Assembly: GCA_047495785.1 (NCBI GenBank)
Contig: JBLDXI010000033.1
Location: 1,798,001 to 1,862,000, forward strand
DNA length: 64,000 nt
Source: Lepidodermella squamata
Lineage: Eukaryota; Animalia; Gastrotricha
Direction of reading: 5' to 3'
Under the pieces are notes generated by a model. That model was given only the letters and a program-made list of their open reading frames with translations, was not told where the DNA came from and made no database searches. Made by a program: the position numbers and the translations under genes. This document shows positions 7,141 to 57,241 of this stretch, piece after piece (positions within the stretch are counted from its first letter, which is position 1; each line of letters starts with the position of its first letter).

Positions 7141-10100
7141 ATGGCAACCCGGCGTGTCTCTTTTGCTAGTGGAGTCAGTTACTCGCAACCACCGTCATGC
7201 GCCACTAGTTTTTCAGTCACCGGAACCAGCCACCCTGTCACCTCATCGACAACCACCTTAATTCACAATTTAGGCGGCATGTGCCTCCGCGACTACCAAT
7301 TAGCCCTTCAACAGTCGATCAACGAGTTGAAATCGCGAGAGCAACAGGTGAATCAGCTGTACAGCTGTTTACTCGACCGTGAAGAGACGATAACTAGGTT
7401 AAATCGCGAAATCGATTCGTGGAAGCTACAGCTAGCTGAGCTGAAACACAAATTGGATACAAATTGGCCAGAATCAGCAGCCGCTCATCATACGCGAAAA
7501 AAATCGACCCTGATTTTGATGCACAAAATCGCAGGCGAGTTGCATCAAATGGTACCGGCGAAGAACCAAAAGGCCCCGGCCGTTCGCACGGATTCGAATC
7601 TGTTGCTAACGAGAACACGCCGAGACCGCCTACGCGCAGCTCTGGCGAAAAACGACCTTTTAGGCCGATTGGACCCGGAACAATCGGATGGCTTGATTGA
7701 AAAAATGACGGAACTATGCGTGTTGCCAGGTCACGTAATTATTCACGAGGGCGAGCCGGGTAGTCAGATTTTCGTGATGGAGGATGGCGAGGTTGATATT
7801 CATCGCGATGGCCAGTTTTTGTGCCGACTTCTGGCGCCGATGGTGTTCGGAGAATTAGCTGTGATTTACAATGCGCCGCGGTCGGCCACAGTTACGGCGT
7901 CTACCCACTGCCGGCTGTGGACGATTGAAAATCGAACTTTCCATAAATGCATGATGCGCATACGCCATCGGACAACGAATAAAATAGCGATGGAACTGCG
8001 CCATATCAGCATCTTTTCTTCGCTATCAAAATCGACACTAACAGCTCTGGTCGACTCGGGGGAAGAGGTATTTCAAATTTCAAATTTATTTAAAAAACGA
8101 TACGAGTGTAAATAAGAGACTAAATAGTAGATGAAGACCTGAGACTGGGATAAGAAAAAATGATCGCTGCCAGTAGGATTTGAACCTACGCGCGGAGACC
8201 GCATCTGATTTCAAGTCAGACCCCTTAACCACTCGGGCATAGCAGCTTTCATATTTTGTGATGACAATAGATGCAATATGTAATAAATCCCTCACAGTTC
8301 CTGTCTTAGCTAATGAATTCAACGACCATCCTCCTAACAAGCTTTTTCAACCGATTAATCAACTTAGGAGGGATTTGTTTTTTATTTCAAGCCCCATTGA
8401 TGGGTTAAGCCGACTGCCAGAAGTACTGCAATACTGGGCTGACTCGTGGGCAGAGACCAACAAGCTGGAGACGCCTGCCCTTGCAACCAAAATTCAGGCT
8501 AATTTCGAAGCCCCCACATAGAGGGCGTTGCAGATATTAAACTACAAAGAACAGATACTACACTTTGACACGCTCCGAATTTTTATCGACCGTACTTATT
8601 TTTATTGACCGAACTTTGATCTTAGCCAGCAAGGCCGAGAAGCGATAACCAAAAACTGATTTAAGGCGTTCATATTGATGTTTTCATCTGAATATTTCAG
8701 CAAATTCAAGAAATGAAAAATTATTAGAAAAATGCAAAAACATGTGCGTCAGCCGGGAGTCGAACCCGGATCGGCTGCTTGGAAGGCAACCATGCTGACC
8801 GTTACACCACTGACGCTGACTCACAGTCCTTGGGGTCGTATTCAACAATGAGGTCTCCACTTAAACGCAGCTCATCGTGCTATTCTTAGTGGTTTTAACT
8901 TCGCGTTCAACCAACTACAACAACAGTACAGTTGGAAATTTAAGCGTTAATTTATTCAGACTTTCGCCAATATATTATCAAGGAGAATTAGATAAACAGG
9001 AATCCGTAGAAAATGATGTTTTTAGTATCGAATCTTTACTCAGCAGCAGCGCCGGTTTCAACGGCAACCGAGTAGGAGAAGTTGTTGGAGGCCGAGTAGC
9101 TGCCGCTCTTGTGGCCCTTGCGACCCTTGCCGTGCTTGCCGCCCTTCTTGCCACCAAACTTCTTGCCGCCGAACTTCTTGCCACCGAATTTCTTGCCACC
9201 CTTCTTGTTGTAGCCGCCGAAAGAGCCCGACTGCGAGTACGAGCCGGACATGGATCCGCGCTTGTGCACGCGCATGAACTTCTTGGTGGAGACCTTACGG
9301 GTGTGCTTGTTCGTGCGGGCCGACACCGAAGCGGACACGGACTTGGAGAACGAGGCACGGCGGTGCTTGCGCCCAGCGGCGAACGCCTTCTTAGACGGGC
9401 GCTTCTTCATCGCGTGCTTCTTCGGCTGACGGTTGTACGACACGCTGATGGAGACGCTCTTTGAGACGCTCTTCGAAACACTTTTGCCCTTGTTTCCGCG
9501 GCCAGCCTCGGCTTCGGAGAAAGCTAAAATTAAGAATCCGAGTTTAGATTATTGGACCAAACAATGCTTTTAAAGATTTACCGAGGGCCAAGAGAACGAC
9601 AGCAGCGAAAGCAAAAACAGCGCGCATCTTTTTGGTTTGAATTGAGAAAAAGAGAGAAATAGATAGTTCGAAGAGAACTTGGTTGTTGCGTTTTCTCCAA
9701 ATTCCATCGAGATTATATACTGAGAGAAGCATTTTTGAAGCGCAGCATGTTTACAAACCAGCTCGTAGTTGATAGTTAACTGCTAATTGTCATCCCCATT
9801 ACAAAGTCGCGTGATTTCTATACCAAATCTGATTTTAATTATGGTCATCTTGATATAATCTGAATTTATGGCGTTTCTATTTTTTAGCTGCACTTCAGCC
9901 AGGGTTCACATGTCTCAATCGCACCTGGGACGTTGTACCTGCTAACTGAAGGCGAGTTAACATCAACATCGTCACTTTGTTCATGCGGCGACCAAGACGG
10001 TCATCTGTCCGTGCCGAAACAGCGGAATTGCCACCGAAAAGCTATAAACATAAAAGCAACAGCTTGTTTCTTCACAAATTTGTCAGATATTCTCATCACA

Positions 10101-12592
10101 GCTCTGACAAGCGGGTCAGACGATGATGAGCTTGATTTTTCAGACATTTATTATCTATCAGCTCCGGAGGCTTCCGCTCTAACAGCTTCAAAGGACAGTC
10201 CTAAACGCATTACCTGCTATCGTCTGGATACAAATACGTGAGTTATCGAGTGAAATCTGAAAAATGATTTGAAATTGTTTTCGGCAGATTAACGCGAGCC
10301 TTCAAAAAGACGCACGATCCGAGGCACATTCAAACACCTCTTGCGTTGTCTCCGACTAACAGTGATGTTACATCTCGTGGGGGATCGACGCGAAAAATGG
10401 GAATAAATGACTTCGCAATCGTCGCTCTTCTGCCTTCAACAGATTCGTTTTCGCACATGTTTTACGTAGTTGATCATCACAGCTCCCAGCAGCATTTGAC
10501 CGTCGACCAGCCGCCGGATGATTCGACGAAGAAAAGCTACGTCATGCGATGGGTGTTGCGGCAGCGAGCTGAAGCCGCTGGTATGGCGGATCGGTTGAAA
10601 AGCGAACGAAATCACCTGTTGATAAGCCAATCATGTCACTTCATAGTTAGGTAAAAAATTTAAAAATAGTTTTTAAATCCCACCAATTGGCACTCATGGA
10701 TCATTTTTTTTTATAAATATTTCATTTTTCTTGGGTTCAAATATTTGCACCAGTAAAAATGAGGTTCCAGCTCTAGATTTAAGCGTCGTGGCACTAAACT
10801 TATCCGATTCTTCGCGATTTCGGCGTTTTCGTTTTTTGATCGATACTGATGCCCTCCCTGGACTTGGGAATTTTCATTTTAGCAACATGCTGCCCTAAGC
10901 TACGTAGAAAAATTATCGATGTTGGGTTCCAATACGCCTGATATCTGGAAAATCACTGATTTTTTAAATTGATACTTGGAATCTCAAATCTCAAATTTAG
11001 TGCTGGAACCCTAAATTTAGGATGCGTACTTGGCGCACCTATTTTTCTTGAACCTAAAAAGATCCAAATTAACTCTAGCGCTGGAACCCTAAATTTGATG
11101 TATCTACTTGGCATACTGTGGTGTGGGGCAACTTGGCCATAAAAGTCGCCTTCTGGTCGATTTCACATCGAGAAAAGCTTTTTTCACGAATTTGTTTCAT
11201 AGGAACATTCCTTGCCACCTGAGCTACAACTTCCTTTTTACCGAATTCGAAAATCGTTTTTAAATGACAAGAAAAGTCAGTACCTTAACTTTAAGGCGCT
11301 GAGATTTTGAGCATTTTTAATAGGGAATTCTGGGATCGGAGGATAACACCGTTTTCACAGAAAGATTCATCACGGTGATATCTCTCAAATGACACCTTGA
11401 ACTCGGAACTCATTGAGAAAAAATACATTAACATGTTTTAATTTTTTAATTTATTTATCAATTTATTTTTGTTCCCAATGAAACATGATTTTTTCTTTGA
11501 TTTTCAATTAATTAGGTGCTAAAATTTTCGAAAATTGGCTCCACTCCGTGTTTGTGATCGAATTTGATATTGTTGAATTTTTCTACCAGATTGATAACGA
11601 CGATGCAAGATCGAATTTCCGTGTACTTCGTCTTCGAAAGCTGTTTGGGAGGTACCCTGGAATCGCTTTTAAAAGACCACATAAACACCGAGTGTTTAAA
11701 CACCCACAACTCATCTTTCTCCCTATTGTCGCCGTTTCGCCGAACAAGCCGACCGACCGGCGGTGTCACATCTCCAGCCGGCATCGAAGAAGACCTTGCT
11801 CGCTTCTATCTAGCCTGCGTCATTGAGGCGCTGGATTTTCTCCACCAAAACGCGATTGTCCACAGAAACGTGTGCCCATCCAGCGTTTGGATCGCGGCTG
11901 ATGGTTACGCGAAATTAGGCGACCTCACCTGGTCGAAATCAGTCGGACTTCGATCTCGTACCTTCTCATTATGCGGGCCAGTTGAACGGCTAGCGCCTGA
12001 AGTTATGCTTAACAAAGGCCACGGTTTAGCGGCTGATCGGTGGAGCGTTGGAATTTTACTCTACGAAATGCTTGTCGGAAAACAGCCGTTTTTACGCGAC
12101 GATCCTATGCTGACTTGTTCGGCTATACTTCAGCACGCATCTAGCGATCAAACGTTTGATTTTTTCGATTTCCCACGTCGCGTGGGTAAAAGTGCTCGCG
12201 ACGTAATCCGGCGACTCTGCCGGCCTGTTGCTTCCGATCGACTGAATTTTGATGAATTGCGAATTCACGGGTTTTTCTCCCAGCCTGGGAATAACAACCC
12301 TCCGTTCGATTGGACTGCCCTGCGAGATTTGACAGTGGTCCCGCCCTATGTGCCTCAAGTCGTTCATGCGACTGATTTCAGTCAGGTCTTGGGAGCAAGG
12401 AAGTTGAATGGATCTATGCCAGTTGCGTCGCTGATGAGTACCTGTAATAATGGTGGGATAGCTGGCTTATCGGAGATACTGCCCGCTGATTATGACACGG
12501 ATCCTGAGAAGGTTTCATCGCGGCACCATTACATGTCCATGTCGAAATCTGACACAATGTCAAGCTGTGGAGACTGGGCCAAAGAATTTTAA
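7141..12592 (+). CDS. cGMP-dependent protein kinase (PKG)-like protein with a degenerate kinase active site
   Basis: N-terminal coiled coil, then a cNMP-binding domain (IIHEGEPG...FGELAVIYNAPRSATV), then an AGC kinase fold (ARFYLACVIEALDFLH, RTFSLCG...APEVMLNKGH...DRWSVGILLYEMLVGKQPF, FDW...PPYVP). Exons are approximately 7141-8067, 9889-10217, 10288-10650 and 11516-12592. Confidence 0.8.
8165..8246 (-). tRNA. tRNA-Ser(UGA)
   Basis: Reverse complement GCTGCTATGCCCGAGTGGTTAAGGGG-TCTGA-CT-TGA-AA-TCAGA-TGCGGTCTCCGCGC-GTAGGTTCAAATCCTAC-TGGCAGCG; long variable arm; T-tract downstream. Confidence 0.93.
8391..8646 (-). ncRNA. U2: U2 snRNA gene (copy A) interrupted by a 51-nt insert
   Basis: Reverse complement ATCGCTTCTCGGCCTTGCTGGCTAAGATCAAAG[insert]TGTAGTATCTGTTCTT..., Sm site AATTTTGG, stem-loop IV loop TATTGCAGTAC. 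The 3' end is approximate. Confidence 0.92.
8745..8816 (-). tRNA. tRNA-Gly(UCC)
   Basis: Reverse complement GCGTCAGTGGTGTAACGGTCAGCATGGTTGCCT-TCC-AAGCAGCCGATCCGGGTTCGACTCCCGGCTGACGCA. Confidence 0.95.
9036..9627 (-). CDS. Secreted Lys/Arg/Ser/Gly-rich cationic protein (copy 1, about 177 aa), nested antisense in the PKG-like intron
   Basis: Exons 9582-9627 and 9036-9523 give signal peptide MRAVFAFAAVVLLALAFSEAEA followed by KSVS repeats and GGKKF repeats. TATA-like element near 9715; strong codon bias; paralog at 45799-46365. Confidence 0.85.
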
Positions 12593-13526
12593 CTCCGCTA
12601 TCATATTAGCCGTTTATAGTGTTTATTTCATATTGTTGTATTATTTTCAATAAAATTTTAATGGAGTGAGCACTGCCCTATTAACGAGATCTTGGAGGAA
12701 TAGCTATAAAATATAATAACAGATAATCTCTATTCCTCCAAGGATCGCACGGCTGCGATGCGCGCGGTAGCGGAAACCTGACAAAGTAAAGGAAACTGAA
12801 ATGAAAAAGCGATGGTTTTTGCCTCGAAACAAACGAAGTGACAGCTATCTTGGCAACTGAAGAGATTTTATCGATGTTTTGTTTGCCTTGAGTGACCGAG
12901 TCCCGGGTTTTACAAGGCGCAAGCATATCTACAACTATTAGGTAGGTATAGGTACTTTGCCGAAATGTTACATATGGGCGAACATTATTCGATTTCAAAA
13001 CCCGTTCTAAAAACTCTGCGTAAACTTACACTTCTAAGACTCCGTTTTCAGAGAATCTCGGCGGTTTCGGTTTTCCTATGTGTGTGATTATGTTACAGAA
13101 TTCGCTGCTGCTACTATTGATACGGGAACCAAAATTAGCTCATAAGCTTGAAACCTGCGATTTCTCATCAACCAAAAATTAGCATTTCGCCACCATGAAA
13201 ACAGCTGAGAAAAATTCGGAGATTTTATTTATGTATCAATATAGAGAAACAAATATATAATCGACTAAAAATTGACAGCAGATCAGGGCTTGTTCTCATG
13301 TTCGATGCTCACGATGAACAACCACCAGTTTTTCACAGCTTCTAGCATTGGTCACTCTCTCGCTCTCTCTCCTTCACTCCCGAATGTTTCTCGATGAAAT
13401 TGTAAATGATATAAAAACGTCAACAATTATTTTCCGCGGCTGAAAAAATGCCAAGAATGTGACGGCGGCAACTTTCGAGAAGGCACAACAACAGACTAGG
13501 ATATATAGCAATTGTCATGTTTCATG

Positions 13527-14605
13527 TCAGTTCGAGGACGACGACGACGAAGCCGCGTGCTGCTCACCCGACCGGCTGCGCTCGAGCAGCGCCGGCACGA
13601 GCACGTCGCGAATCTGCTCGCACACCTGCGGCCACGGTCGCGACGCGTCCAGCACCAGCACGGGACACTTGGGCAGCAGTGGCCTGTCCGTGTCGTAGAT
13701 CAGCGCCCGACTGCTACTGCCGTTGCTGAGAATATTCTTGCTCTGACTCGCGCTCAGATTGGGCAGCAGCCAGTGTTCGTGCCGCTCGTGCAGCTGCTCG
13801 AGGTAGTCCGGGCTCACGACGCGCTCCTCCGGCCGCGCCCGCTCCAGAATGCGCTTGTACACGGTTTCGGGCTGCGTTCGCAGGTACACGATCAGGTTCA
13901 GCGGGCAGCGGTTCGCCTCCGTCAGAAATTTGAACCAGCCGTCCACAACCTGCGGCAAAAAAGTAGTTTTAACTTGATTGAAACGTAATTGAAATCAATA
14001 GAGAAAATGATCGCGAAATCCCCGAAACATTCAAAAATTTTCAAAACGTTATTACTCTCAAAGACGCGGCTACAATATTTCCGCATAGAAGGGATAAAAT
14101 TGACTGACCTCGATTTCGACATCTGACATGAGTTTGTTCTTCTTGAAATTTTCGACGAAACAGTATCGAGCCGAGTAGATGGACCTTTCGAGCACGTGAA
14201 ACGAATGGGCATCTTTGTTATCGAGCACGTTCTGGTGCACGACGAACATGGTCAGCTGAACGTAGCTTTGAAACAAGAAGCCCCACCGCTTCGTATCTTG
14301 ATACATCAGATCCTGAAATTGTGTATAACAATTTATAGCTCAACTCTTTTTATTACGAGAATGGTGGTGCTCACGAGAATATTTTGTCCGCCGAGATTGC
14401 GCCATTTTTCGACCGGTTCTTCATGAACTATGCATTGTGGTAATACTTTTTTCAGTTCGGCTAAAACGCTAGTTTTCCCACTAGCAATATTTCCCTCGAG
14501 TGAAATCTATTACAAAAAATTTACTTGAAATTTCATAAAGTCTGTTGAAATCCTTACCACTGTGCCAAAAAACCGCCTGGTAGCAGTGAAAATTTGCCGA
14601 TTCAT
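13527..14605 (-). CDS. TK2: Deoxynucleoside kinase / thymidine kinase 2-like
   Basis: P-loop EGNIASGKTS, EEPVEKWRN, FLFQSYVQLTM, ERSIYSARYCF, VYLRTQPETVYKRILERARPEE; 4 exons. Confidence 0.9.
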
Positions 14606-14805
14606 TAATGTAAAAAATAAATCTAGAAAATTATTAGTATCTTCATTAGGAAAGTTTTAGCGTGACAGCAAGCCATCAAATTTGTCTCTCTCTCAATTAT
14701 ATCACAATGATCAGCAGTGTTTTAAATAAGTACGTTAATCTGTATAATATTGCAAATCGGCCGAAAAATTTCATGAAAGCAGATACAAGAAGTAATGACA
14801 AGAAG

Positions 14806-16087
14806 CTACATTTTTGATCCAGGCCACGGAAAACGAGCGTACAAATCGTGAGCTTGTTGTAAAATTGCCGAAGACTGTACAGCAAATAGCAAATGTAAAG
14901 CATAAAATACTATTTCAAAATTCTCACTTGGCATGGAGGATAATTTTGCAGCAGGCGCAAATTAGTTGTAAAATCGCCGCCGAGAAGTGCATCTCGTTGC
15001 ACTACCAACATCGCACAGCATACGTAAAGCAGAAATCTAAACCTGTTCGGATCGCTGAACATCACGTCCCAAATGTGAAGCAGTTCGGGCAACGGTAGTT
15101 CTTGCGATAGTAACAAGCTGAAAAATCAGTGTATGCGAACAAATTCGAACAAATATTCAGGCTTCATTCGTACCTCAGCCAACGAAACGCGTAATATTGC
15201 GGCTGAATGCGCTGCTGTTCAAGGATGGTCGACACGTGAATGTCAACGGATCGCACGAGTTCGGAAAACGTCGCCAGCTGTCCGCGAACGCCTGTTTCTG
15301 ATTCATCCAGAGATCGGATGAAACAATCTCTAATTTCGCCCATCAGATTCGTAAAACAGAAAAAAGCATCTGCCTCGGCGTGTTTCCGCCACTCTGGATC
15401 TGGGTCGTTCGCAAAAACGTAGTACAACGGGCCCAAGACTTCGTTCATGCCCTGAACATAGCCCTGGCCAGGATTTAGCTTGTAGAAAACAAATAGAATT
15501 CGTTCGATTACTTCCCAGTGGACTTCTTCTGTGTCTGTAAACGACGACCTCGCCGATGCAGAGCCTTTTTGTTCGACTGTACTAAGGCCCATGCGGTCAC
15601 GCACAACTGTTTCCGAGTTCAACTGGGCATTGTGAACACGTAATCGCAGCAACTTCGCCCAGCTTTCATTAATGCCACTGGTAGTCATTTGGAAAAATGC
15701 GAGGTCTGGGGCGATACGACGGCAATCTCGGTCGATCTGCATCAGTACTTCATTGTCAACAAAATAAGACCGCCATTGGCTGTTTTGGCCCGGATTCAAT
15801 GGGTGGTCACACGTTTCTGGCCCGCTATCTCCATTTGGGAGAGCTTCGGATAGAAAACTGTTCAAAAATTGCATGTATAGGCCCCGCTTCTCAGCAAGAA
15901 ACGAGTCAAATTCGCTACGCTTAGGAACGAGGTAATCTAACAGGAGTTTCCAGCACAGTGATCGCATTCCTTTTTCGTCAGGGATGCCGCCGTGGAAACA
16001 TAGCTGACGAAGCTTTTCAATAGGAATAACTTCAGCGTTTAAGCACTCATGGAACGCGTCGATTCGATTTCTGTAGGTATTAGACAT
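14806..16087 (-). CDS. TBC1D13: TBC1 domain Rab-GAP, TBC1D13
   Basis: GIPDEKGMRSLCWKLLL, DHPLNP, QIDRDCRR, HWEVIERILF, GYVQGMNE, EADAFFCF, YAFRWL|LLLSQE; 3 exons. Confidence 0.92.
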
Positions 16088-16246
16088 ACTAGAAAGATTT
16101 AATGGTACCTAAACAAACAAAATTAGGAGTTATGATGTCTTGATAAACAAGAACAAGCACATGCGACACCTCGACAATATCCGAGAAATTGAATTTAACC
16201 AGAACAAAAAATGGCACAATCAGGTGGCACTGGCCGTTTTCAAATT

Positions 16247-16877
16247 CGTGGGTAGAAATGCCCACTCAGAGGGATCCCTCTCAGAGGGCGTCCCTCTCAG
16301 AGGGGCAGCCATTTTAGGGCCTACCTCTTAGAGGGTCCCCTCTCAGAGGGTTCCCTCTAAGAGGGCTCCCTCTTAGAGGGCTCCCTCTCAGAGGGCCCTC
16401 TCAGTGGGCTATTCATTTCCTGTCGCTTCCGGTCATTTCCGCGCCATTTTAAGATCATAATCATTTTTAAACCTTATGCTCTGTAACGCGTTATTTTACC
16501 CGTTTTTGTCACGCGTTATGCATTTTTTTGCATGGGAAAAATGGACAACAAACTGGTGTCACAAAACGTAACGCGTTAAATTGCTCTCAGTGAAGTGATT
16601 TAAGTGATTTTAAACGCCTTGACTCTATTTTGCCATAATAATACTTTCATTTTAAGGCGCTGATTATGATCTTAAAATGGCGCGGAAATGACCGGAAGCG
16701 ACAGGAAATGAATAGCCCACTGAGAGGGCCCTCTGAGAGGGAGCCCTCTAAGAGGGAGCCCTCTTAGAGGGAACCCTCTGAGAGGGGACCCTCTAAGAGG
16801 TAGGCCCTAAAATGGCTGCCCCTCTGAGAGGGACGCCCTCTGAGAGGGATCCCTCTGAGTGGGCATTTCTACCCACG
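16247..16877. mobile_element. Foldback/MITE with 217-bp terminal inverted repeats and a 5-bp AAATT TSD
   Basis: 16247-16463 is the reverse complement of 16661-16877. AAATT flanks both ends (16242-16246 and 16878-16882). The arms are built from palindromic CCCTCTNAGAGGG subrepeats. Confidence 0.9.
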
Positions 16878-17269
16878 AAATTGGACAAGGCTGGCACTGC
16901 ATAGAGCCTCAAGATGACCTTTGAGATCCGGTCACTAGTCCCAGACTTTTTTTGAAAGAGCTGAGAGGGAGTGATTCCACGTCGGAGTTGCTACAAAAGC
17001 GGCCTTGCATGCAATGGGCGCAGAAGGCGCGCCAAGGAAAGGTACCTCTGACTTACCTGATGACGGATCGCGCTTATTTGGGCGTTTTGGTCTCGCGCGC
17101 GCATCATAGAAAATATTAAGCGCCAATTTTCGACCGCGTTAAATGCAAACTATTGCTTTTCAAGTGATCTTAATATTTAAAATGTATGTTGATGCATTAA
17201 ATAAAATTACTATTAGCAACGCGTCGCGCTTCATTCTTTCAACATGGGAACTAACAGAACCTTAGCTTA

Positions 17270-18340
17270 ATGTTGCGCTGGGGCGCAATGCGTTTCCTGT
17301 CTGTTAATTGGAACTTTTTCGTGGCGGGCAGCCTCTTTGGTAGCCTTTGGGCTCTGTGCTGGGTCAAGCTTCTATCCAATGGGGGCTTTTCACGCCTCTT
17401 GAATACAGTTATTTACCAATATCCGATTCTATCATCGCCTCGTATTGCTGAAGGAACGGGTCCGAACCGCGATGGGCCAACTTCTTGGCCGCAAAACATG
17501 AGCATAGCAGAGTTAAAGCCTTCCGCAGGCGTCATTGTCAACTCCACGCTAGCTGAAGACATGACGAGCTCTATTCGAGTGTTTTGCCTTGTAATAACAA
17601 CTGCACAATTCCATAGTGGAAGAGCTCAGGCTGTCAGAAATACATGGGGAAAGCGGTGTAACAGGCTACTGTTTCTGAGCGATGCAAACAATACTGAAAT
17701 TGGTGCTATACCGCTAACAAATACTTCTGGTTATTCATCCATTTGGGGTAAAGTCAGGCGTGGAATGGAGGAAGCTCATTTACATCGCCATGCCTACGAT
17801 TGGTTCTTGAAGGCAGACGACGATACCTTTTTTGTACTGGAAAACTTTCGCTATCTTGTCTCAAAGTACTCTCCTGGTACTCCGTTGTTTATTGGACGCC
17901 TGCAACGCTCTGGCACTCCATCTGGATTTCAGAACGGTGGATCGGGTTATGCGCTGTCAAAGAGAGCGTTGGAACTTCTCCACGATTTATTCATCGTGGA
18001 AGGTATACCGAAACAAATTTGCAATACTTTCGATGACAGCGGGGTCGAGGAAGTTGAAATTGCAAAATGCTTACACGCTGCGGGCGTGAAATTCGTTGAT
18101 TCACGAAGCTCAACTGGAAACCAGCGCTTCTTTCCTTTCATGCCATATGCTCACTTGTTGAACGATACAAGATTTATTGGTTGGCTTCCCAATATCGACT
18201 ATTATCCTTCTGATTATTCCAACTGCTGCGATGACTATGCTGTTTCATTTCACTACATTTCTCCAACTGAGATGTATAGTCTCGAGTATTCTATCTACCG
18301 CTTGCAACCCTTTGGAATACAAAGAAAATACGAGCTTTGA
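17270..18340 (+). CDS. C1GALT1: Core-1 beta-1,3-galactosyltransferase (GT31)
   Basis: Type II TM anchor, RVFCLVIT, TWGKRCN, DWFLKADDDT, GGSGYALSKRAL, CCDDYAVSFHYI; intronless. Confidence 0.9.
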   Translation: MLRWGAMRFLSVNWNFFVAGSLFGSLWALCWVKLLSNGGFSRLLNTVIYQYPILSSPRIAEGTGPNRDGPTSWPQNMSIAELKPSAGVIVNSTLAEDMTSSIRVFCLVITTAQFHSGRAQAVRNTWGKRCNRLLFLSDANNTEIGAIPLTNTSGYSSIWGKVRRGMEEAHLHRHAYDWFLKADDDTFFVLENFRYLVSKYSPGTPLFIGRLQRSGTPSGFQNGGSGYALSKRALELLHDLFIVEGIPKQICNTFDDSGVEEVEIAKCLHAAGVKFVDSRSSTGNQRFFPFMPYAHLLNDTRFIGWLPNIDYYPSDYSNCCDDYAVSFHYISPTEMYSLEYSIYRLQPFGIQRKYEL

Positions 18341-18390
18341 CAACATTTCTCTTTTTTTGAATAGAGCTTTATTCAAATTTTTCGATAGTG

Positions 18391-30459: not shown

Positions 30460-32814
30460 TCAGTCGCTGGCAGGCGCTCCGTTGGCTGCCACCATCCATG
30501 AGTGGTGCTGTCTGCGCTTCGTTCCCGTGCGCAGGCGGTCGCTGCTCTTCCGCAGTGCGTGGCACTTCCACGCGAACGAGAACTGCTCCGCCGGAATTAG
30601 GTTATCTTTTTTGTTGTCCTCTTCGATCTAAAAGATCAAACACAATTAGCACAATTAATCGCTGGAGAATCAGTGCGTTTGGCATAATAAAAGACAAATT
30701 ACATACCGTGAATTCACTAATAGTGGAGATTCTAGAAATCGCGGGAATTAACAGACATATGAACTTATGTTAAAGGTCGCCCTACTTGGATTCCTGATGC
30801 TGATGCCCAGTTATTCAATTTAAATAATTACCGGATAAAAATCGTGTTATAGGTCATGATTATGAGGCTGAATCTGAACCCTGCACAAATCTCGGTAGCG
30901 TTGTCTGAGTCGGAAAAATCGCCTAATGGAAATGTATGTGAACCTGAACCTGTTTAGTTTTTACAATTTTAAACGAAGCGATTCGTTGGATTTTACAGGT
31001 GCTATTCGACAGGTTTTACGACCGCCCGTTTCAACGTGAATAAAGCAAAATCCAGTGTTCTGAGAATTTGTTTCATAATAATGCTATTTTCTCTGCGGTT
31101 TTCTTTTTTTCGTAAGTTCAAAGCCACGAATTCCTGTCAATTTTTATTCATTTCGCTTCAAGTTGGCCGTCTATCAAGGGGCACCGCGAATAATGACCTT
31201 CAAAGTCTTAAACTAAATGCCCACTCAATAGACTGAGGTTAGATAGCCAGGGAGCTTTTGAAATACCAAAATATGAAGTTATCGAATCCCATGTTTGATA
31301 TTCACTGAAACCTTGACTATTCAAACCTTGGCGAGCTCTTCTGGCGAAAGCAGCGGCAGTCGCAGGTAGACAACAGCGTTGCGAGCGACAGCGCCCGCCG
31401 ACTTGCCCTGCGTCACCGAGTTGATGTTCGCCCACTCGCGAACGGCGCTCAGCAGCTCCAGCTCGTCCATGTTGATGCGGTCCGACTGCAGGATGAACGC
31501 AAGTGCGCTCTCCGACAGCTCGTGCACACTTTTGTCCCGGAACACTTCCGCGGCGTGGTCTTCCACGTAGGCGATGGCGCGCTGCTTCAGCTCGTCGCGG
31601 CCATACGTCACGGCGACCCGAAGTGCTTCACACGCGTTTTGCGGCGACATTGAATTCTGCAAAAATTTCACAAAATATCGATTATCGATTTTGCTGATCC
31701 TGATTGATTTTGATCCCAATAATTTATCATTTGTTTTTGTTTTCATGCCCCCCACTGGTGGGGGTGAGCCGAGTCCCGGAGGCACTGCAATACCGGGCCG
31801 ACTCGTGGGCAGGGTCCAGCAAGCTGGCGCCACCTGCCCTGCTAGCCAAAAATCGGGCTAATATCGTAGGCCCCACATGGAGGCCGTTGTAGATATTAAA
31901 CTACAAAGAACAGATACTACACTTTGATCATAGCCAAAAAGGCCGAGAAGCGATAAAGAAGGGAACGCCAAAAATTGGCTCGGCCGGATTCTAGATTGCA
32001 GCGAATATCGATTCGTAACTTCGCGTGCATATCCAAACCAGTTTTATGAGGGAAAAAACAAAAGAAGCAGCTTGTGCCGCCCGGAATCGAACCAAGACAG
32101 TCAGAAATACCAAACAATGTTGAACCCTGAAAGCATTTCTTTTCTATTTTAGATAATCTGGGCTAGAATTAAAGATGTTTCTGATTCAAATTCCTAATGA
32201 TTTTTTATTTTTGTCTGGTAATTTAACCCGTGCATTCTCCGGCTGTTCAACCATTTTCCATTTCCATTACATTTTTGCCCAAATTTCCCGAAATCAATTT
32301 TCGATTATTTTTCATTTTTACAAAAAAGCTAACCTGGAGAAACGAGATGACGGCCTTTTGAAGGTCGTCGAGGCCGTACTCGATGGCGGCTCCGATGGTG
32401 TCGAAGGCCATTTTCGGCGCGATCGACAGCGTGTTTGTGTAGATGTACTCGAGGATGGCGAGAAAGACTTCGGGCGCAATGTCCGATAGCACGAGCGGCG
32501 TTTCTGTGTCCTGTTTGCCCTGCTTCGACTGCTGCTCAGTGAACATGGCCTTGAACACCTGGCAACGAGCCATTATTATGCACCGGTGCGCGCATATTTG
32601 CTTGCGCTGAGGTCCAACGATAAATTTGATGTCGCTGAAAAAAATAATCCATATTATAAAAAATATGTTTCATATTTTATTTAAAATAAAATTTGGGAGC
32701 TATTATTTTAGTTTATTTTTACCTGAATTCCTTGTTATTGACTAGCTTCTTCATTTCGGACGCGAATGTGTTGGCATCGCCACGAATTCGAATCGCACTG
32801 TCCTCTTTTCCCAT
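30460..32814 (-). CDS. BTBD19: BTB/POZ-BACK domain protein, BTBD19-like
   Basis: EMKKLVNNKEFSDIKFIVG...IYAHRCIIMARCQVFKAMF, FLAILEYIYTN, BACK segment LQSDRINMDELELLSAVREW...LRLPLLSPEEL, last exon AWKCHAL. Confidence 0.85.
31760..31954 (-). ncRNA. U2: U2 snRNA gene (copy B, uninterrupted), within a BTBD19 intron
   Basis: Reverse complement ATCGCTTCTCGGCCTTTTTGGCTATGATCAAAGTGTAGTATCTGTTCTT..., Sm site GATTTTTGG, loop IV TATTGCAGTGC. The 3' end is approximate. Confidence 0.95.
32073..32105 (-). pseudogene. tRNA 3'-half remnant with an intact B box
   Basis: Reverse complement ...CTTGGTTCGATTCCGGGCGGCACA followed by T-tracts; no recognisable anticodon or D arm. Confidence 0.55.
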
Positions 32815-44034: not shown

Positions 44035-44302
44035 TTTGAAGTTAGAGGATGATCAAAACACGAACGAAAATGAAAGCGAGAAGATTGCTATGAGCTTTAA
44101 ATTGCAAAAGCAGGTGATGATTAAATCGAGAAAATAAATCGCAATTTATAGGCCCTGTGCCACGCGATCAAGGTTCACAAACACAGACCCTTATCGGCTC
44201 GTGCTTTTAGATCACACGCGACTCAAATACCTTGTGAGGCACGAGAACATTTGAACGACTTCATCGTTTTTTCATGATTTTTTATGGCGCTCAGTTACTG
44301 CA

Positions 44303-45650: not shown

Positions 45651-45798
45651 TGGGATCAAGAGATCAAAAATTGTGAAAAAATTGTATAAAGACTCGCACT
45701 TTAGTTCAGCGTTACAAATTTACTTTCAACTTTACGACTTTGAAATAAATTATCATTGAAGAATACCAATTTTCGATGCCTTTCAATCAAAAGAGTTT

Positions 45799-46365
45799 TT
45801 ATTTAGAAGGAGCAGCACCGGTCTCGACGGCAACAGAGTAGGAGAAGTTGTTGGAGGCCGAGTAGCTGCCGCTCTTGTGGCCCTTGCGACCCTTGCCGTG
45901 CTTGCCACCCTTCTTTCCACCGAACTTCTTGCCGCCGTGGCGCTTGCCACCCTTCTTGTTGTAGCCGCCGAAGGAGCCCGATCGCGAGTACGAGCCGGAC
46001 ATGGATCCGCGCTTGTGCACGCGCATGAACTTCTTGGTGGAGACCTTGCGGGTGTGCTTGTTCGTGCGGGCCGACACCGACGCGGACACGGACTTGGAGA
46101 ACGAGGCACGGCGGTGCTTGCGTCCAGCGACGAACGCCTTCTTAGCCGGGCGCTTCTTCATAGCGTGCTTTTTCGGCTGTCGGTTGTACGACACGCTGAT
46201 GGAGACGCTCTTCGAAACACTTTTGCCCTTATTACCGCGGCCAGCCTCAGCTTCGGAGAAAGCTAAAAGAATGAAAATGTGTTTGATTATTGGATCAGGC
46301 TATGATTTTTAAGATTAACCGAGGGCCAAAAGAACGAGAGCAGCCAAAGCGAAAACAGCGCGCAT
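45799..46365 (-). CDS. Secreted Lys/Arg/Ser/Gly-rich cationic protein (copy 2, about 169 aa)
   Basis: Exons 46320-46365 and 45799-46262; near-identical to 9036-9627 with the same intron position and repeat-unit indels. Confidence 0.85.
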
Positions 46366-47857
46366 CTTTTTGTTGAATTGAGAATAGAGGAATAGATAAG
46401 AGCTCAAATATAACTGAATAGTTGTTAGATCTCCACAATTTCGCCGAGATTATATACCAAGAAAGCAATTAATTGACGCGTTGCAAAGAAATGAATTCAA
46501 CGCCGCTGGCGAACTGCTAATTGGATATCCCAACTCAAAGTCATATGACTATGACTAATTTGTTTGAATTTCAATCATCTTAATCAAATGTGCTTTGTTC
46601 CTTGTTCTGTATATAGCCAATTTCCTCCTGCTCAGCTTCGATACGGTAGGAGGCCCTTTAATAATTGATTATTGGTGTGTCCTTCCGAGTTCGGGGCGCT
46701 AATGCACCCATCTTCGAACGCGTATTCCAGACAGCCTTTTGCACAAGAGGGTCGAAAAATTCGGCAATATCGCATTTTATTTCATAATGTTAATATATAT
46801 ATATATATGTATATCAATATAATCATATAATTTGAATAACTCGTTGTTGTAACAGGTAATTGATTGCAATTGATCTCGACGCGATTACGCATCCAAGCCG
46901 ATATCAATGGAAAAAACGCACAGTCATGATTTTAACAATAAGAAGACTATGTTGAACGTTTCAGACATTAACAATCTTCGCGTTTGTTTCAAATTTTCGG
47001 TAATACAGGTGCATATCCAGATGATAATAATATGCATGTCATTTTTTGGAGATTTTTCGAGAAATATTATATACGATATGATGAGTAGCGAATGGCAACA
47101 ATACACGTTTCATGATAATAACATCGAGATAATGATAATACCTATATGCGACAACTTTTCATCGTCCAGATTTTGAGATGAGAATAAGCGACAAACCGAG
47201 CGAGGACCAGGTCGTCGCAGAAAGTACATGAAAGTTTCGGTGTGCGTTGTGCGTGTGTCGAAAATGTATACAAGAGTGCGAGCTATTCGTCCATAATTAT
47301 TATTACCGTCCAACCAACCGCAATCATTTCGCTACAATTATCATCGAATAATTTAGCAATAAATATTATAGTAACAACAAAGATCGCTGCGATGTTGACT
47401 TCGTTCTCATTGAATAGAAGACCTTTTATGTTCAAATTAATTAATCATTCTTTTTCGAAATCAAATTCAAATGTAATGAACTGAAATGTTTATCACAACG
47501 CATCGCGCGTTTCTCAAAAAATGCGAAACAATAGGCGCGCGGTTTTTTGCTCACTTCGGTGTTTGTTTTTTTGCAAGAAAAAGAACGAAAAATTGTCAAC
47601 TCAAGCTCTAGTTTAGTTTTGTAATAACTCTTCATCTTCCAATGCTTCCAAAAACATCGCGGGACTAGTTCAATTGTTTTGCCTTCCATCTCTCACCAAA
47701 ATAGTACAGGTAAAATTATGAAGGAGGTTAAATAATTAGTAATTAATAGGAGTAATTAATATATAATGATAATGCACATGCTGGTATATATGATTGATTA
47801 TTGATTGTTATGTTTTTTTGACAAGTCACTTTGTTTTGTACCAGCCCCGTGTTTCTA

Positions 47858-51133
<3,276 letters not shown>

Positions 51134-54100
51134 ATTTTGATGAATTTTCGGTTTGGCTACTTGAGATAGTAGTAGGTCGATGTAGATCGATGATAACAAC
51201 AAAACGACGAACGAACGAGAGATATAACGAGAACGAAGGAAATAAAATTTAAACAAAAAATTCTAGAAAATTCAATTAATTTAATAAAATGCTCAAAATA
51301 TCCCAGGTCCCAACCGAAATTGAACAATCAGGCGCAATAAACGTTTGACAACTGGAATAAAGCACCGGCTTAGATAGAGCTTGCGAGCGGAAAATCGCGA
51401 TAATATTCGATGCGCGCGCTTGAGCGACAACACCTCAGGTTTTAACATGCGCGATCGAAGGTCGCGAGTTAATAATTAATGGCCAACGACGTCGACGAAC
51501 TGAATATGAAGAAATAATAATAATAATAATTTGCGTCGAAAAATGTAAGAATAAAGAGTTGGAAATATTGCGCGCTGCTATACTATATAGGTATCGGGCA
51601 GTGTTATATATTATAGTATTATAAGTAGTAATACGTTGTGTTTAGAAGGTGTATTAATAAGCAGGCATTGGAGTCGTCGTCGGCCGATTTGTTGCATTAT
51701 TGATAAGGCTTACAGCGCTTCCGGGTGGAGCACCAATGCGAGCGAAAAAGGCCCCGTGCGAAAAATCAATCGATTTACCGCGAGCGGGCATTGTCGCGCG
51801 CAAAAGCGCGGCGGAATACTAAAACACTACACTACACATAAAATAGGTCGAGTTTTATACACTTGGAATAGAACTTTACAAGGCAGCGAGCGGGCACAGG
51901 CGCCTCTCGCGACAAATGAAGGAATTGCGTGTGAAGAGGCTATACACTTCATATCGAGGCTTATTACTTATTACTTAGCCTCCTCCCATCTATCACTCCA
52001 TCATCATCATCACAATCATCATCTACCGGCGTGCGAATAATAACAACAATCGCCATAATAATAACAATATATATAGGTAGGGAGTGAGCGTACACCGCCT
52101 GCTGTTGCGTGGCGATGCACCTCCAATTTTAGGAAAATAAAAGTGCCTGACTGCTCAAGGCAGGAAGGGGCTGTATAATAGGCGACAACACCGCATCGCC
52201 CCGGAAGAAACAAAAGGTGAGACCGTGCGCCGTTCGACTACTCGAACGGTGATGAACTGCCGGCGAGTGAGTGAGTGAGTGAGTGAAATTTTGAACGTTA
52301 GGCTTAATTAAAAATAGATGACGGTGGTGAATGGGACATGATGAAGAGTCCAGTGCAGAGCAGTAAGAAAAGACAGTATAGGGGGAAAGCGCACGTTCGC
52401 GCGTGTTTGCGTGCGCGCGCCCGTAGGCTAGCGATGACCCAGTCGCGCTGTGACACGCCGCACCGAGCACGTAGGCACCCCGGCAAACAGGTGGGAAGAG
52501 GCGCACGCGGCCGCGCCATGTTAAAATAACAACAATAAATAAGTAATTTTCTAACCGTCGGTTGGTGGCGCGGGCCGAATTAGATGATAACACAACAAAT
52601 CGCCGATCAAAGCAGCGGAAGGCTGGCCATCATCGACAGAATTGAAAATTGCTTACTCAAAATAAATTGCCGACAAAGAAGTGTACGCCAAACACACGCG
52701 TGTTCATTAAAATTAATTTCAGGTGCGAGTGGCAATAAACGCGGCTCCAAGACGGCGCTTTTAATCGTGAGAAAAACAAAAATACTCGTAAATAGCTAAC
52801 AAGTCGCAAATTGCTAATTGAATAAGTGACGAGGACGCCTATAATTCTCTGAGCCTCTCAGTATTTCTAGCCTTAAACCTTGATGGTAAAGCGAAAGAAA
52901 ATGATGAAGCTATCTTGGCCTGCGATTCCCTAAATCACGATGAAAAATATCGAGCGTACATCTGCAAGAACCCAGTTTACCACCTTACGGGTCCCAGGCC
53001 TAATTGTCGAGAGATAAGGCGAATTTGCTCGTGTGGAGATTGAAAAAAGCATCTGAATTTAGAGAAAGATATAATTTTAAGAAAGAGAAAAATGTTTGTC
53101 TCATTTCTCTGAAATAAAATATTTTTCAAAGGCCATAAATTCAGCTAAAATCTATAGGGACATGAGCCAGGGTGTTGGAATTAATCCCTGAATTAATTAG
53201 ATTTTTCCGAAATTAAGTTTTTGTAAAGCAAATTTCCAGCCTACAATCCGTTGAATAACGAAAAATAAGTCCAATGGCTAGGTTCGGCTCTTTATCTGTA
53301 TAAACTAAAAAAAATGGCGCGAATGAGGCCGAACGAGTGGTGTCTAAACGCATTAGATTGCTGATAACAAAAAATTGTTAAATAATCGGTGCCATAAAAA
53401 GAGACGGACCATCTTCATCGACACTAATCGAATTAGAGCAGGCGTAAAGAGGCTATCTATTGCCTGCATGTACGAAGCGCGTGGAATCAGCATGCGCTAT
53501 CAACACGGCGGTTCCGCTTGAATATTGGGGCGCCGTGGTGGCGGGTTATAAAATAATATAAAATAGATGATCTTATAATCATAATAATAATCATTACTTG
53601 GCATTTCATATCGCTATAACGCAGCAGCTAGCGCGATTTTCTCACCTGTTTACCGGCTGCACGCGTGCATTCTTCAACGAGTTATCATCAGTGTATGCGG
53701 GCGAAAAGAATTAGCGAATATATAAGAAAAGAATGAAAATGAAAGAGTTTTAAGAAGCGCCCGCACGCTCGCCCATCTGCGAGATGCAGATATCGCTGCG
53801 CCGCGATTGTTTAAATAAATCAGCACCCGTGTTCCAGCATCAGTTTGTTTTGACTATGGCCCGGCTTTACGGCCCAGGCAAATCACGACCCGACTAATAT
53901 ACCTCTATAGTTCGCAATAAATAAAAATCTATAACCCTGGCCGTGTTGAACTCGATATTAATAATGCTAATAATTATCAGCTCTATAGATAACGTGTTTG
54001 GTGCGTTAAGTAAGCAACAGCTAAGGCAATATTAGTTTTTTCGGCCAACCCAAAACCGGGTGTTAATTGTCCGAGCCGGTGCAGCGGCCACAGAAAAAAT

Positions 54101-55855
54101 GAGAGAGGCCTCAAATAAAAACGAGACGCCGCGCAGTATTATTAGTAGTGTAGTAGCAACACAACCCCGGGCGGTGGCGAATAATTATACCTCGGCATAG
54201 AAATGAAACGAAACACAACAAAATCAAACGTTTTTTCGCTTCAAAGTGTAAGAAGCACCCTTGTCACTTTGAAGAGCGACTATTAGCGGAATGACGATAG
54301 CTTGTCGAAGCATGCCGGCGTCTTGTCGTAAAACTGTATTAGCTATAATCGATTTCGAGAGATATGAAGATGCGAAATTCCACCATCTTGCCACTTAGCA
54401 AAAATGGCGCCGGCTCCCCCCTCGCCACTCCCCACCACCGAAAGATGATTCGAGTCGGTTTTTATATTTTATTATTATTATTTGTATTGCCATTTTGGAA
54501 GGAGGCGCAAACTATATATATATGATTAGCCTGCTGCTGTATCTCCGGTCCTAATAATAGTAGTACTAATGACAGGCGCGGAAGAAGCTTGGCCCGACAA
54601 ATCATCGCGCCAATACACAAAACACATATCTCTTCTATCTGTGTCTCGCGGGCGACAATTTATTGATAGCTGCGGTTTAAATATGTGTTTATGACGGTTC
54701 CGCCCGGCTAAAATTTGACAAAACGCCTTCTGTTCATGGCGGCGCGCGCGCATCGCGTCGATATACGCCAAATCACTGGTGGTGAAATTTAATACAAGCT
54801 ACGATAATTTAATAGCTATAACGAAAATTGATGGCCATTTTAGGCAAATTGTCATCATTGCACATATCACCTCGGGGCAAGTGAATCGCGATTAAGATAA
54901 TGAAAAAGATAAATAATTTTCGATATGATGATGGGCAAGTATAACACATTTTTGACGCGTTCACGAGACGCGCCGATATAATGATGATGATGAATCATCG
55001 CGCGCATCCAAGTGCGGCGAATACAAGCAGCAGGTTCCGAACAAAGGATCGAAAAGACGGATATTGCAAAAGTGGAGCTTATTCACTATATTGAAGATGC
55101 GTTATGTGTTATTTAGGTGGGCGTGTTGATTATTTATTCGAATAATTAGTAACACCTTCACAGAGCGCCGGCTCCTTCTGGTGGTGGTAGTAGTAGTAGT
55201 AGTAGTATTATTGTGTTCACCTTGCCGTTTCGCGATCTGCTAGCAATTACTCGCGGATGAATAGCGTGATTAGTAGCGTGTATTATATAACAGACACAAT
55301 ATTATAATATTAAGGCGGTTTTACCGCGCCGCCGTAAACCTTTTCCTGATGATGCACCTGTAGGCGAAACCGCGCGGCCTTACTCACCTTGGGCGCGCGG
55401 CTGAACGGCGATAGGAAACATCTTTAACCATTTTGTTATTCTTCGACCTGCGGTTCAGCAACAACTGCGCCTTAAACGTGTACGTCGATTGGCGGGCAAA
55501 TGGCGGCACATTTGTACTTGCGTAATGATATGGCGTTTTCACTGTTCAGAACTTGATAAATGAAAGTTGAAGAAATTTATTCTCCCACATAAAAAGCTGT
55601 TATTGTGATTCGAGTAATAAAATGGAATGTCAAATAAGCCAAACAGGTGTTTTGCGAGTTCTGGAACTGTACTTTTATTATCCATTTTATACCGATTCTA
55701 TTTGGCACTTCGCTACTTCGTCCGAAGTCACTTTCCAGGTTAGCAAATTCGCTGTCGCAGTTAACTGAGTAATTGCAAAACATTGATTATGCGTCAACCG
55801 CTGTTCAAACAACTGCCTGGAGAAGCCTTAGACGCTTCATTTGTTTTTGGATTTT

Positions 55856-56014
55856 CGGGTGTGGCGCGAACGCCGATACCCAAGTGAAATATTTTGCACC
55901 CGACTCCGCCGATGAGGCAAAGCGCAAGGGTCAGCGCGCCGAAGTGCAATGGCACGCCTCGCCTTGGGGCGCCCGGCTTCATGAGCCCGGGTCATCCCAG
56001 TGCCAGGTAAGTTT
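55856..56014 (-). ncRNA. U1: U1 snRNA (variant copy 1)
   Basis: Reverse complement AAACTTACCTGG 5' end; stem-loop I CCCGG-GCTCATGAAG-CCGGG; loop II CATTGCACTTC; helix H GCAC/GTGC; terminal GGCG-TTCG-CGCC hairpin. Confidence 0.9.
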
Positions 56015-56165
56015 AGTGGCAATAGCTTTAGACAACCGGTCCCATTCTAAGATAACGCACATGAGAGTGATTCACAACATTTGCATATTTACAAAAGCTT
56101 ATTGATAATGAATAAGCAGCATTCGTGCGTTTTTTCCTTTTTCCAGGGAAAAAACTTGCGACAGA

Positions 56166-56237
56166 TAGCAGAGCGCAGTTTCGATCTACAGACCTCTGGG
56201 TTATGGGCCCAGCGTGCTTCCACTGCGCCACTCTGCT
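56166..56237 (-). tRNA. Initiator tRNA-Met(CAU)
   Basis: Reverse complement AGCAGAGTGGCGCAGTGGAAGCACGCTGGGCC-CAT-AACCCAGAGGTCTGTAG-ATCGAAA-CTGCGCTCTGCTA; A1:U72 pair, GGG/CCC anticodon stem, AUCG T-loop. Confidence 0.92.
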
Positions 56238-56899
56238 TGTCTAGGCCAGTTGGTAATTCTAGAGAAGTCGATATCGATGATCGATGCCAATGAGTCATAC
56301 GATGTCAAATTATTGCTATGCAATTGTGGATTTTCTCAGAAACAACGCCTCGTTTTCCTCCAACAAGACCATTTCCAATTTCCAAACGAATTTCCAAGGA
56401 AAGCTGCTGTGCGAAGTGTCCACTTATTACTCGCTTCACCGTACTAAAAACCTGAAAAGGGTTGGGTAAGCATAAGGTGTTACCGGGTTATTGTTTTATT
56501 TTTATATCGGGAATTTTTTTGAAAATATGGGCATTTTGTAAAATTAATTTCGAACTATTCGCCCAGGCTACTCGCAATCGTCGCATTTCACCTCTTTCAA
56601 CTGAGAAAGCAAAACTAAATTGGGATCTTTTGTTGTTCATTTTATTTATATTAGGCACAGTGAAAGTTGCTTAAACCGGACCGGTCTAAACCGGACGATT
56701 TCGGGTGGCTCGATCCGAAAGTGCTGGAAAACTTACTGGAAAGCTGAAGAAAATTCTCTCGTATACTGCTAACCATAGCTGAAGATTCGAGAACCAAGTC
56801 CAACAGTCTCAAGAATAAAATTTTCTCAGCCATTAAAACCAACCAGGAAACGAACGCGAATTCCCGAACTTTATAGTTACTAATTTGTTTTTGAATTTT

Positions 56900-57058
56900 C
56901 GGGTGTGGCGCGAACGCCGATACCCAAGTGAAATATTATACACCCGACTCCACCGATGAGGCAGAGCGCAAGGGTCAGCGCGCCGAAGTGCAATGGCACG
57001 CCTCGCCTTGGGGCGCCCGGCTTCATGAGCCCGGGTCATCCCAGTGAAAGGTAAGTTT
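56900..57058 (-). ncRNA. U1: U1 snRNA (variant copy 2)
   Basis: Near-identical duplicate of copy 1, but the 5' end reads AAACTTACCTTTCAC and helix H is weakened. Confidence 0.82.
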
Positions 57059-57189
57059 AGTGGCACTAGCATTACGCAATTGCCCACATTCCAATATAAC
57101 TCTCACTAGAGTCGTCCCCAACATTTGAATATTCACAAAAGCTTACTGATAAGGAACCTTTTTGCGTTTTTTGCTGAGCATGCTACAGA

Positions 57190-57241
57190 TAGCAGAGCGT
57201 GGGCAGTTTTGAAATAGAGACATCTGGCTTATGGACCCAGC
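57190..57241 (-). pseudogene. Degenerate tRNA-iMet copy
   Basis: tagcagagcg..gcagttttga...gacatctggcttatggacccagc aligns with 56166-56213; the 5' part is lost. Confidence 0.7.

Follow-up and report, generated by a model that had tools for sequence, protein, structure and literature searches.

Co-oriented tRNA genes and tRNA leftovers lie at a narrow distance upstream of spliceosomal snRNA genes in the gastrotrich Lepidodermella squamata

Canonical animal genes for spliceosomal small nuclear RNAs (snRNAs) possess a proximal sequence element (PSE), which is bound by the complex SNAPc, and a 3' box, to which a distal enhancer is added in vertebrates. In trypanosomatids, snRNA, U3 and 7SL genes rely on RNA polymerase III (Pol III) for transcription, and the A and B boxes of an upstream transfer RNA (tRNA) gene, located at a distance of 93-105 base pairs (bp), are essential (Nakaar et al. 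1994, as described in PMC2784804; Leishmania U2, PMC4950102). The partner tRNA is divergent, mutation of its A or B box abolishes expression, and tRNA-like leftovers also occur (PMC2784804; PMC4950102). Here, we describe a related arrangement in an animal: in a window of 64,000 nucleotides (nt) from the gastrotrich Lepidodermella squamata (GenBank assembly GCA_047495785.1, contig JBLDXI010000033.1, positions 1,798,001 to 1,862,000), two U2 and two U1 genes lie downstream of co-oriented tRNA genes or of the leftovers of such genes, and this pairing recurs throughout the genome.

Like its trypanosomatid counterpart, the gastrotrich arrangement places a tRNA or tRNA-like sequence directly upstream of the snRNA gene within a narrow range of distances (mostly 106-130 nt), draws on several different tRNAs as partners and includes tRNA-like leftovers. 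Unlike the divergent trypanosomatid partners, the gastrotrich tRNAs are co-oriented with the snRNA gene, and many gastrotrich snRNA genes have no tRNA at all. Trypanosomatid genes are read by Pol III without a PSE-type promoter, whereas those of L. squamata appear to carry their own elements at about -73 and -35 (counted from the snRNA start, +1), a 3' box and, in U2, internal T-runs. The natural loss of the B box from leftovers upstream of intact U2 genes furthermore argues against a strict dependence. With canonical animal snRNA genes, those of L. squamata share a rigidly placed proximal element that is common to U6 and to the U1, U2 and U4 genes of the RNA polymerase II (Pol II) type, an A-rich 3' box and a SNAPC3 gene; they differ in that most U1 and U4 genes have a complete Pol III gene where a distal element would be located (-117 to -190).

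Composite small-RNA repeats have been described for animals, including 5S ribosomal DNA with snRNA, tRNA or spliced leader RNA genes, U2-U5 arrays in fish and the 5S-tRNA linkage in mussels, usually as one lineage-specific unit with kilobase-scale spacers (PMC3464664). The gastrotrich cassettes resemble these repeats in the physical linkage of small-RNA families and in the inclusion of both genes in one duplicated unit, but differ in that one tight geometry is repeated across five snRNA families with at least seven tRNA species. Our literature search for tRNA-snRNA linkage retrieved only the trypanosomatid cases, cases from Euglena and 5S-type linkages in animals, and no metazoan tRNA-to-snRNA cassette. 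Generic patterns for iMet-to-U1 and Gln-to-U4 (iMet, initiator tRNA-Met) gave zero matches in scans of metagenomes, which presumably contain few animal contigs.

A recurrent pairing of tRNA and snRNA genes

Small-RNA genes of the window were located with ARAGORN and Rfam, and gaps and initiator features were read directly from the sequence. All seven genes are encoded on the minus strand (Table 1), and a co-oriented tRNA or tRNA leftover precedes each of the four snRNA genes (4/4), as the initial annotation of this stretch had claimed. The gaps between the tRNA 3' end and the snRNA 5' end amount to 97 nt (Gly/U2-A), about 117 nt (leftover/U2-B), 151 nt (iMet/U1 copy 1) and 131 nt (degenerate iMet/U1 copy 2), in agreement with the earlier estimates of 98, 118, 151 and 131 nt; the positions given in the initial annotation hold as well. 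Alignment reveals that the two U1 cassettes form a tandem duplication with an offset of 1044 nt and a common spacer insertion and thus represent one pairing, so that the window holds two or three independent pairings, fewer than the 'at least three' originally counted.

To place these pairings in the context of the 121-Mb genome, we compiled snRNA matches for at least 47 U2, 42 U1, 15 U4, 48 U5 and 32 U6 genes; these lists are lower bounds, in which the window genes U2-A and U1 copy 2 are themselves not included. ARAGORN was run on the 1.5-kilobase flanks of 30 U2, 30 U1 and 15 U4 loci. A co-oriented tRNA-iMet is located 115-125 nt upstream (151 nt at the window locus) in 25 of the 30 U1 genes, and the coordinates of iMet copies add nine of the remaining 12, which brings the total to 34 of 42 U1 genes linked to tRNA-iMet. 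Truncated iMet leftovers are found at two of the five U1 loci without an intact tRNA (L032 and L060), and U1 comes after about 70% of the scored iMet genes. For U4, a tRNA-Gln(CTG) in the same orientation lies 113-123 nt upstream in nine of 14 genes.

The partners of U2 are mostly 5'-truncated leftovers: an intact tRNA precedes only the window gene U2-A and locus L027 (Gly, 112 nt), and a B-box motif in sense orientation is present at -127 to -160, mostly at -134 to -138, in 13/30 U2 loci (flank expectation 0.018 per locus). BLAST comparison with the tRNAs of the examined loci identified a Ser 3' end before U2 L004 and a Gly 3' half before U2 L028. Such 5'-truncated tRNA 3' halves occur before U2 L001, L004, L005, L006, L023, L028 and L029, and their breakpoints seem to be concentrated inside tRNA genes.

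Pairings of U5 and U6 were scored by anchored exact-pattern searches for a tRNA 3' end followed by a T-run, which yield lower bounds: this combination was detected 108-129 nt upstream of five of 48 U5 genes and at 142 and 186 nt in two more (7/48), and 106-144 nt upstream of U6 in 8/32. Comparison with in-genome tRNAs assigned the U6 partners to Glu(TTC) and Gln(CTG) and the U5 partners to Arg(TCG), a Leu(CAA)-like tRNA and Lys(CTT). Upstream of all five snRNA families, the same site is thus occupied by at least seven identified tRNA species and several other T arms.

The initial annotation had proposed that distance and orientation be compared with random expectation. With the motif GWTCRANNC, whose frequency in the flanks is 0.0003 per nt or about 0.02 per 56-nt target, a B box was found between -150 and -101 in sense orientation in 44 of 72 non-redundant U1, U2 and U4 loci and in antisense orientation in one. 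Counts in the remaining bins range from 0 to 4, except for a second peak that corresponds to a tRNA-Leu farther upstream of iMet. Chance pairing can be rejected, since about 0.02 occurrences per locus would be expected, compared with 13-27 of 30 loci observed. The tRNA-snRNA pairing is therefore real, recurrent and systematic, co-oriented and narrow in distance. Downstream tRNAs are rarer in the ARAGORN flanks and lie 125-420 nt past the snRNA end. On contigs 7 and 16, Leu(TAG), iMet and U1 form a recurrent three-gene unit.

Promoter elements and terminators

Judged from their sequence, the snRNA genes carry a rigidly placed PSE-type promoter of their own. An element resembling TATGCAAAT is located at -72 to -75 in 64 of 73 distinct U1, U2 and U4 upstream regions, irrespective of tRNA linkage, and at -73 +/- 1 in 42 of the 44 regions from U1 and U4; the matched U6 strings show it at about -74. 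A second element, AGAAYGCGG with its variants, follows in register at about -36 to -27. Furthermore, SNAPC3 is encoded in an open frame at C17:1930110-1930709 (PF12251, E=1e-48, 171 bits), which in part answers the earlier proposal to look for SNAPc subunit genes. The contrast that the initial annotation drew between tRNA boxes and PSE/SNAPc promoters thus does not hold for this animal. The -73 element and AGAAYGCGG presumably resemble the octamer and Staf/SPH motifs of vertebrates, where these motifs belong to the distal enhancer and not to the proximal promoter.

At the other end of the genes, the 3' ends of U1, U2 and U4 are followed after 8-20 nt by an A-rich box, RAAACAAA(T), and no consistent T-run is present, which bears out the earlier description of an A-rich 3' box in place of a T-run. 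Two T5 runs occur within U2 itself, and every tRNA is followed by its own T5-T9 run within about 5-15 nt.

Some tRNA-less U1, U2 and U4 genes possess a second upstream module, which consists of repeated GTGCGC/TGCGCA around a perfect or near-perfect octamer, GTGCATATGCAAAT (U2 L007-L010, L021, L022 and L026; U1 L038 and L040; U4 L069). This module was found in 1/34 tRNA-linked loci, 3/12 loci with leftovers and 10/24 loci with neither, and defines a second class of promoter that hardly overlaps with the tRNA-linked one. Five tRNA-less U2 loci carry a GGGYGGAGCTT box at -93 to -136.

The role of the upstream tRNA

We favour, with a probability of roughly one half, a reading in which the cassettes consist of independent Pol III and SNAPc-type units that stand at near-minimal spacing in mixed tRNA/snRNA arrays and were spread by duplication, leftovers being truncated copies and the tRNA not being required. 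Because the snRNA gene has its own promoter and 3' box and the tRNA its own T-run, the composite cassette would represent not one but two separate transcription units, arranged head to tail near the minimum workable spacing. The first would be a tRNA gene of the usual Pol III kind, which has its A and B boxes inside the gene and ends at its T-run. The second, which begins about 25 nt past this T-run, would be a self-sufficient SNAPc-type snRNA gene, defined by the -73 element, AGAAYGCGG and the A-rich 3' box, and U1, U2, U4 and U5 would be read by Pol II. The pairing may have originated from the location of snRNA genes inside tightly packed, mostly co-oriented tRNA arrays, and segmental and tandem duplication would then have spread the tRNA-snRNA pair, with 5' breakpoints inside the tRNA giving rise to 3'-half leftovers. 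Duplication of whole cassettes is evident from tandem arrays, from the 1044-nt U1 repeat of the window and from co-amplified units such as Leu-iMet-U1 in the C7 and C16 U1 families and the Gln-U4 family.

Several observations indicate that snRNA genes can do without the tRNA. Full-scoring U2 genes of 159 bits (L007-L011, L021, L022, L026) and intact U4 (L066-L069, L073) and U1 genes (L038, L040) are found without a tRNA or B box. The U1 sequence of L040 is identical to that of the tRNA-linked L039, so that reads cannot separate the expression of these two copies by isoform sequence. In the U2 cluster on chromosome 15, the largest one, homology among copies starts exactly at the T-arm leftover, and the invariant A58 of the B box has been lost in six of nine copies, in contrast to the conserved -73 and -35 elements. 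Lineages that keep a B-box leftover and those that keep none stand at about 12:10, compared with target sizes of 51:61 nt for random 5' breakpoints; this ratio fits random breakpoints and, together with the A58 losses, gives no support to the idea that leftovers kept the B box under selection. Moreover, even young families vary by about +/-5 nt in how far the B box lies from +1, in contrast to the rigid distance between PSE and +1.

Spacing within the arrays points in the same direction. The distance between different tRNAs in co-oriented pairs is a very regular 63-89 nt, with a tail to the right (e.g., L009, L037, L052, L060), and the spacers between tRNA and PSE in nine U1 lineages measure 39, 40, 40, 41, 42, 42, 43, 49 and 75 nt, with a randomised sequence (identity 0.52 vs 0.45 for shuffled spacers). 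The distribution of spacer lengths is a floor with a right tail, not a symmetric optimum. In view of the intact tRNA-less genes, the decay of B boxes and the equally stereotyped spacing between tRNAs, an obligatory promoter role of the tRNA is unlikely. The suggestion of the initial annotation that tRNA boxes may serve as upstream promoter or insulator elements of snRNA genes thus stands in so far as the pairing is systematic, co-oriented and shared by many tRNAs, and probably fails as regards an obligatory role.

An auxiliary role, by contrast, is plausible. tRNA genes and TFIIIC sites act as chromatin boundaries or insulators in yeast and human, and the more usual effect of a nearby tRNA gene on Pol II promoters in yeast is repression. 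By analogy with such boundaries, a stably bound, nucleosome-free region next to a Pol II promoter would be a conceivable auxiliary mode; at most, the TFIIIC/TFIIIB-bound and nucleosome-free tRNA might aid the adjacent promoter by keeping chromatin open or by acting as a barrier to read-through.

The notion of independent, closely packed units has to be weighed against a number of findings that it does not readily accommodate. The same geometry formed repeatedly and always in co-orientation with different tRNAs (for U1, iMet; for U2, Gly and Ser; for U4, Gln; for U5, Arg and a Leu-like tRNA; for U6, Gln and Glu; in addition, at least six other T arms), and some 75 cases at 106-130 nt compare with only four at 142-186 nt. 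Neither so sharp a distance peak nor the asymmetry between upstream and downstream tRNAs is obviously predicted by purely neutral packing, and the distribution of the GTGCGC module hints at a requirement for some element ahead of the PSE, a role that the tRNA may fill. It is possible, although we consider it less than probable, that the upstream tRNA or its TFIIIC-bound B box, located about 64 nt upstream of the PSE, is a working distal promoter element that, by enhancing, insulating or excluding nucleosomes, materially raises snRNA output, with the GTGCGC-type module as a functional alternative, in an animal counterpart of the trypanosomatid arrangement. The convergence of at least seven tRNA species on all five snRNA types, including the Pol III-type U6, would be explained in this way, as would the concentration of 44 of 72 loci in one 50-nt bin, the preservation of spacer length despite randomised spacer sequence and the complementary distribution of the GTGCGC module. 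It would also be in line with the tRNA linkage of 80% of the genes for U1, the snRNA required in the largest amount, and with a distance of the same order as the critical 93-105 bp of trypanosomatids (PMC2784804). A working element of this kind is, however, difficult to reconcile with the many intact genes that have no tRNA, with B-box decay both in U2 leftovers and before U1 copy 2 of the window, and with the presence of the arrangement in only 15-25% of U5 and U6 genes. The distance between B box and PSE varies by at least half a helical turn, spacing between tRNAs is just as stereotyped, and the ratio of B-box-retaining to leftover-free lineages is that of random truncation.

Two further explanations carry less weight. 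The geometry could be the footprint of a mechanism and not of selection, produced by the insertion of snRNA cassettes (or of tRNA copies) into a favoured site at a fixed distance from a Pol III complex or by breaks or recombination focused at tRNA genes. Some mobile elements do target tRNA genes, at least seven truncated tRNA lineages compare with one intact lineage before U2, and the homology boundary of the chromosome-15 cluster coincides with the edge of the leftover. Yet the cassette borders lack common element ends, target-site duplications and tails, different lineages have unrelated spacers, and the truncation points differ (nt ~24, ~40, ~47 and ~61), which renders this explanation improbable. 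Co-orientation and the short spacer would also suit a single Pol III transcript of tRNA and snRNA that is later cut apart, as in plant tRNA-snoRNA or Yarrowia tRNA-5S genes. This we reject as extremely unlikely, in accordance with the initial annotation: T5-T9 terminators directly follow the tRNA, the spacer contains a full PSE-type promoter, U2 has internal T5 runs, and the snRNAs end in a 3' box without a terminal T-run.

Irrespective of its cause, a tight co-oriented geometry arose repeatedly before five snRNA families in an animal that appears to retain a normal SNAPc-type promoter. A further proposal, which we put forward only tentatively, is that Pol III tRNA genes with their TFIIIC/TFIIIB complexes were repeatedly recruited as a distal activating or boundary module of SNAPc-type promoters, both for Pol II snRNAs and for U6, interchangeably with the GTGCGC module and as a convergent metazoan counterpart of the trypanosomatid partnership. 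If true, L. squamata would offer a natural system for studying the cooperation of the Pol III and Pol II machineries, and its genome even provides natural controls, namely identical snRNAs encoded by copies with a tRNA, with a leftover only and with no tRNA. A contribution of the tRNA to expression would mean that Pol III complexes serve as upstream elements of Pol II and type-3 promoters in Metazoa. If the tRNA contributes nothing, the cassettes would be a clear example of small-RNA genes that are packed to minimum spacing and then co-amplified.

Small-RNA genes of the window and minor observations

Table 1. Small-RNA genes and associated sequence elements of the 64,000-nt window (positions within the window)
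Feature	Position	Strand	Evidence and remarks
U2-A A-rich 3' box	8373-8390	-	ttgaaataaaaaacaaat; sequence reading
tRNA-Ser(TGA)	8165-8246	-	ARAGORN and Rfam; about 145 nt past the U2-A 3' end; no snRNA after it
U2-A	8391-8646	-	Rfam covers 8400-8583, 101.4 bits; 5' end read at 8646
tRNA-Gly(TCC)	8744-8816	-	ARAGORN; Rfam 62.6 bits; T-runs catgTTTTTgcaTTTTTc immediately 3'
U2-B A-rich 3' box	31729-31745	-	tgaaaacaaaaacaaat; sequence reading
U2-B	31746-31954	-	Rfam covers 31759-31954, 158.6 bits; terminal stem extends to about 31746; full-scoring
T4 and T6 runs after the U2-B leftover	32050-32066	-	read as former Pol III terminator
tRNA 3'-end leftover before U2-B (locus L029)	32072-32096	-	T arm cttgg-ttcgatt-ccggg and acceptor-like strand
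U1 copy 1	55855-56014	-	Rfam
-73 element of U1 copy 1	56079-56087	-	TATGCAAAT; PSE-type element common to U1, U2, U4 and U6
Initiator tRNA-Met(CAT)	56166-56237	-	ARAGORN; Rfam 43.5 bits; T6 terminator at 56149-56154
U1 copy 2	56899-57058	-	Rfam; tandem duplicate 1044 nt upstream of copy 1
Degenerate 5'-truncated tRNA-iMet leftover	57190-57241	-	alignment to iMet nt ~24-72

The four cassettes of the window differ in their state of preservation. The tRNA-Gly(TCC) before U2-A is identical to four other genomic copies. U2-A itself is probably a defective or dead copy, as suggested by its low Rfam score compared with U2-B, by its upstream elements, which are shifted and leave no -73 element in register, and by a 51-nt insert at 8562-8612. 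This insert follows ATCAAAGT and is bounded by the 7-nt direct repeat TCAAAGT, and the insert region (8562-8619, minus strand) falls just ahead of the branch-point-recognition sequence; it resembles a small insertion with target-site duplication inside a dead gene copy.

The leftover before U2-B had been described as a tRNA remnant that retains its B box. The B box GGTTCGATTCC is indeed present and starts at -138, in a T arm whose stem can pair; of the tRNA itself, only this arm, an acceptor-like strand and the T-runs have survived, and the 5' half is gone. At E<=10, Rfam gave no tRNA match for this leftover or for the one before U1 copy 2, both of which are recognisable by alignment or motif alone.

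The tRNA-Met before U1 copy 1 is identified as an initiator by its A1:U72 pair, three G:C pairs in the anticodon stem and the T loop ATCGAAA. It departs at two positions from a sequence that 26 copies elsewhere have in common, with a C.A mismatch in the D stem and an additional G.U pair in the T stem as the result, and its gap to U1 has been widened by an insertion of about 33 nt relative to the usual 115-125 nt. These two changes, the low Rfam score and the enlarged gap may indicate that this cassette is entering decay. U1 copy 2, with GG>TT at positions 11-12 and a -73 element weakened to TATTCAAAT, is probably decaying. The leftover upstream of it had been interpreted as a degenerate tRNA-iMet, which its alignment confirms; its B box has been destroyed by the change from GATCGAAAC to TTTCAAAAC.

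Three minor observations concern loci elsewhere in the genome. SNAPC3 lies about 13 kilobases from a U4 cluster (C17:1943107-1978223), which is probably a coincidence. A weak U4-like match of 51 bits (L075, C1:1551066-1551228), which begins with AGCTTTGCGAAG and has neither a -73 element nor an upstream tRNA, could be U4atac or a pseudogene. The U1 loci L031-L060 comprise 20 distinct sequences among 31 copies, and paired changes across stem-loop I (positions 23-45) look compensatory, which suggests that these are several functional U1 variants and not pseudogenes.

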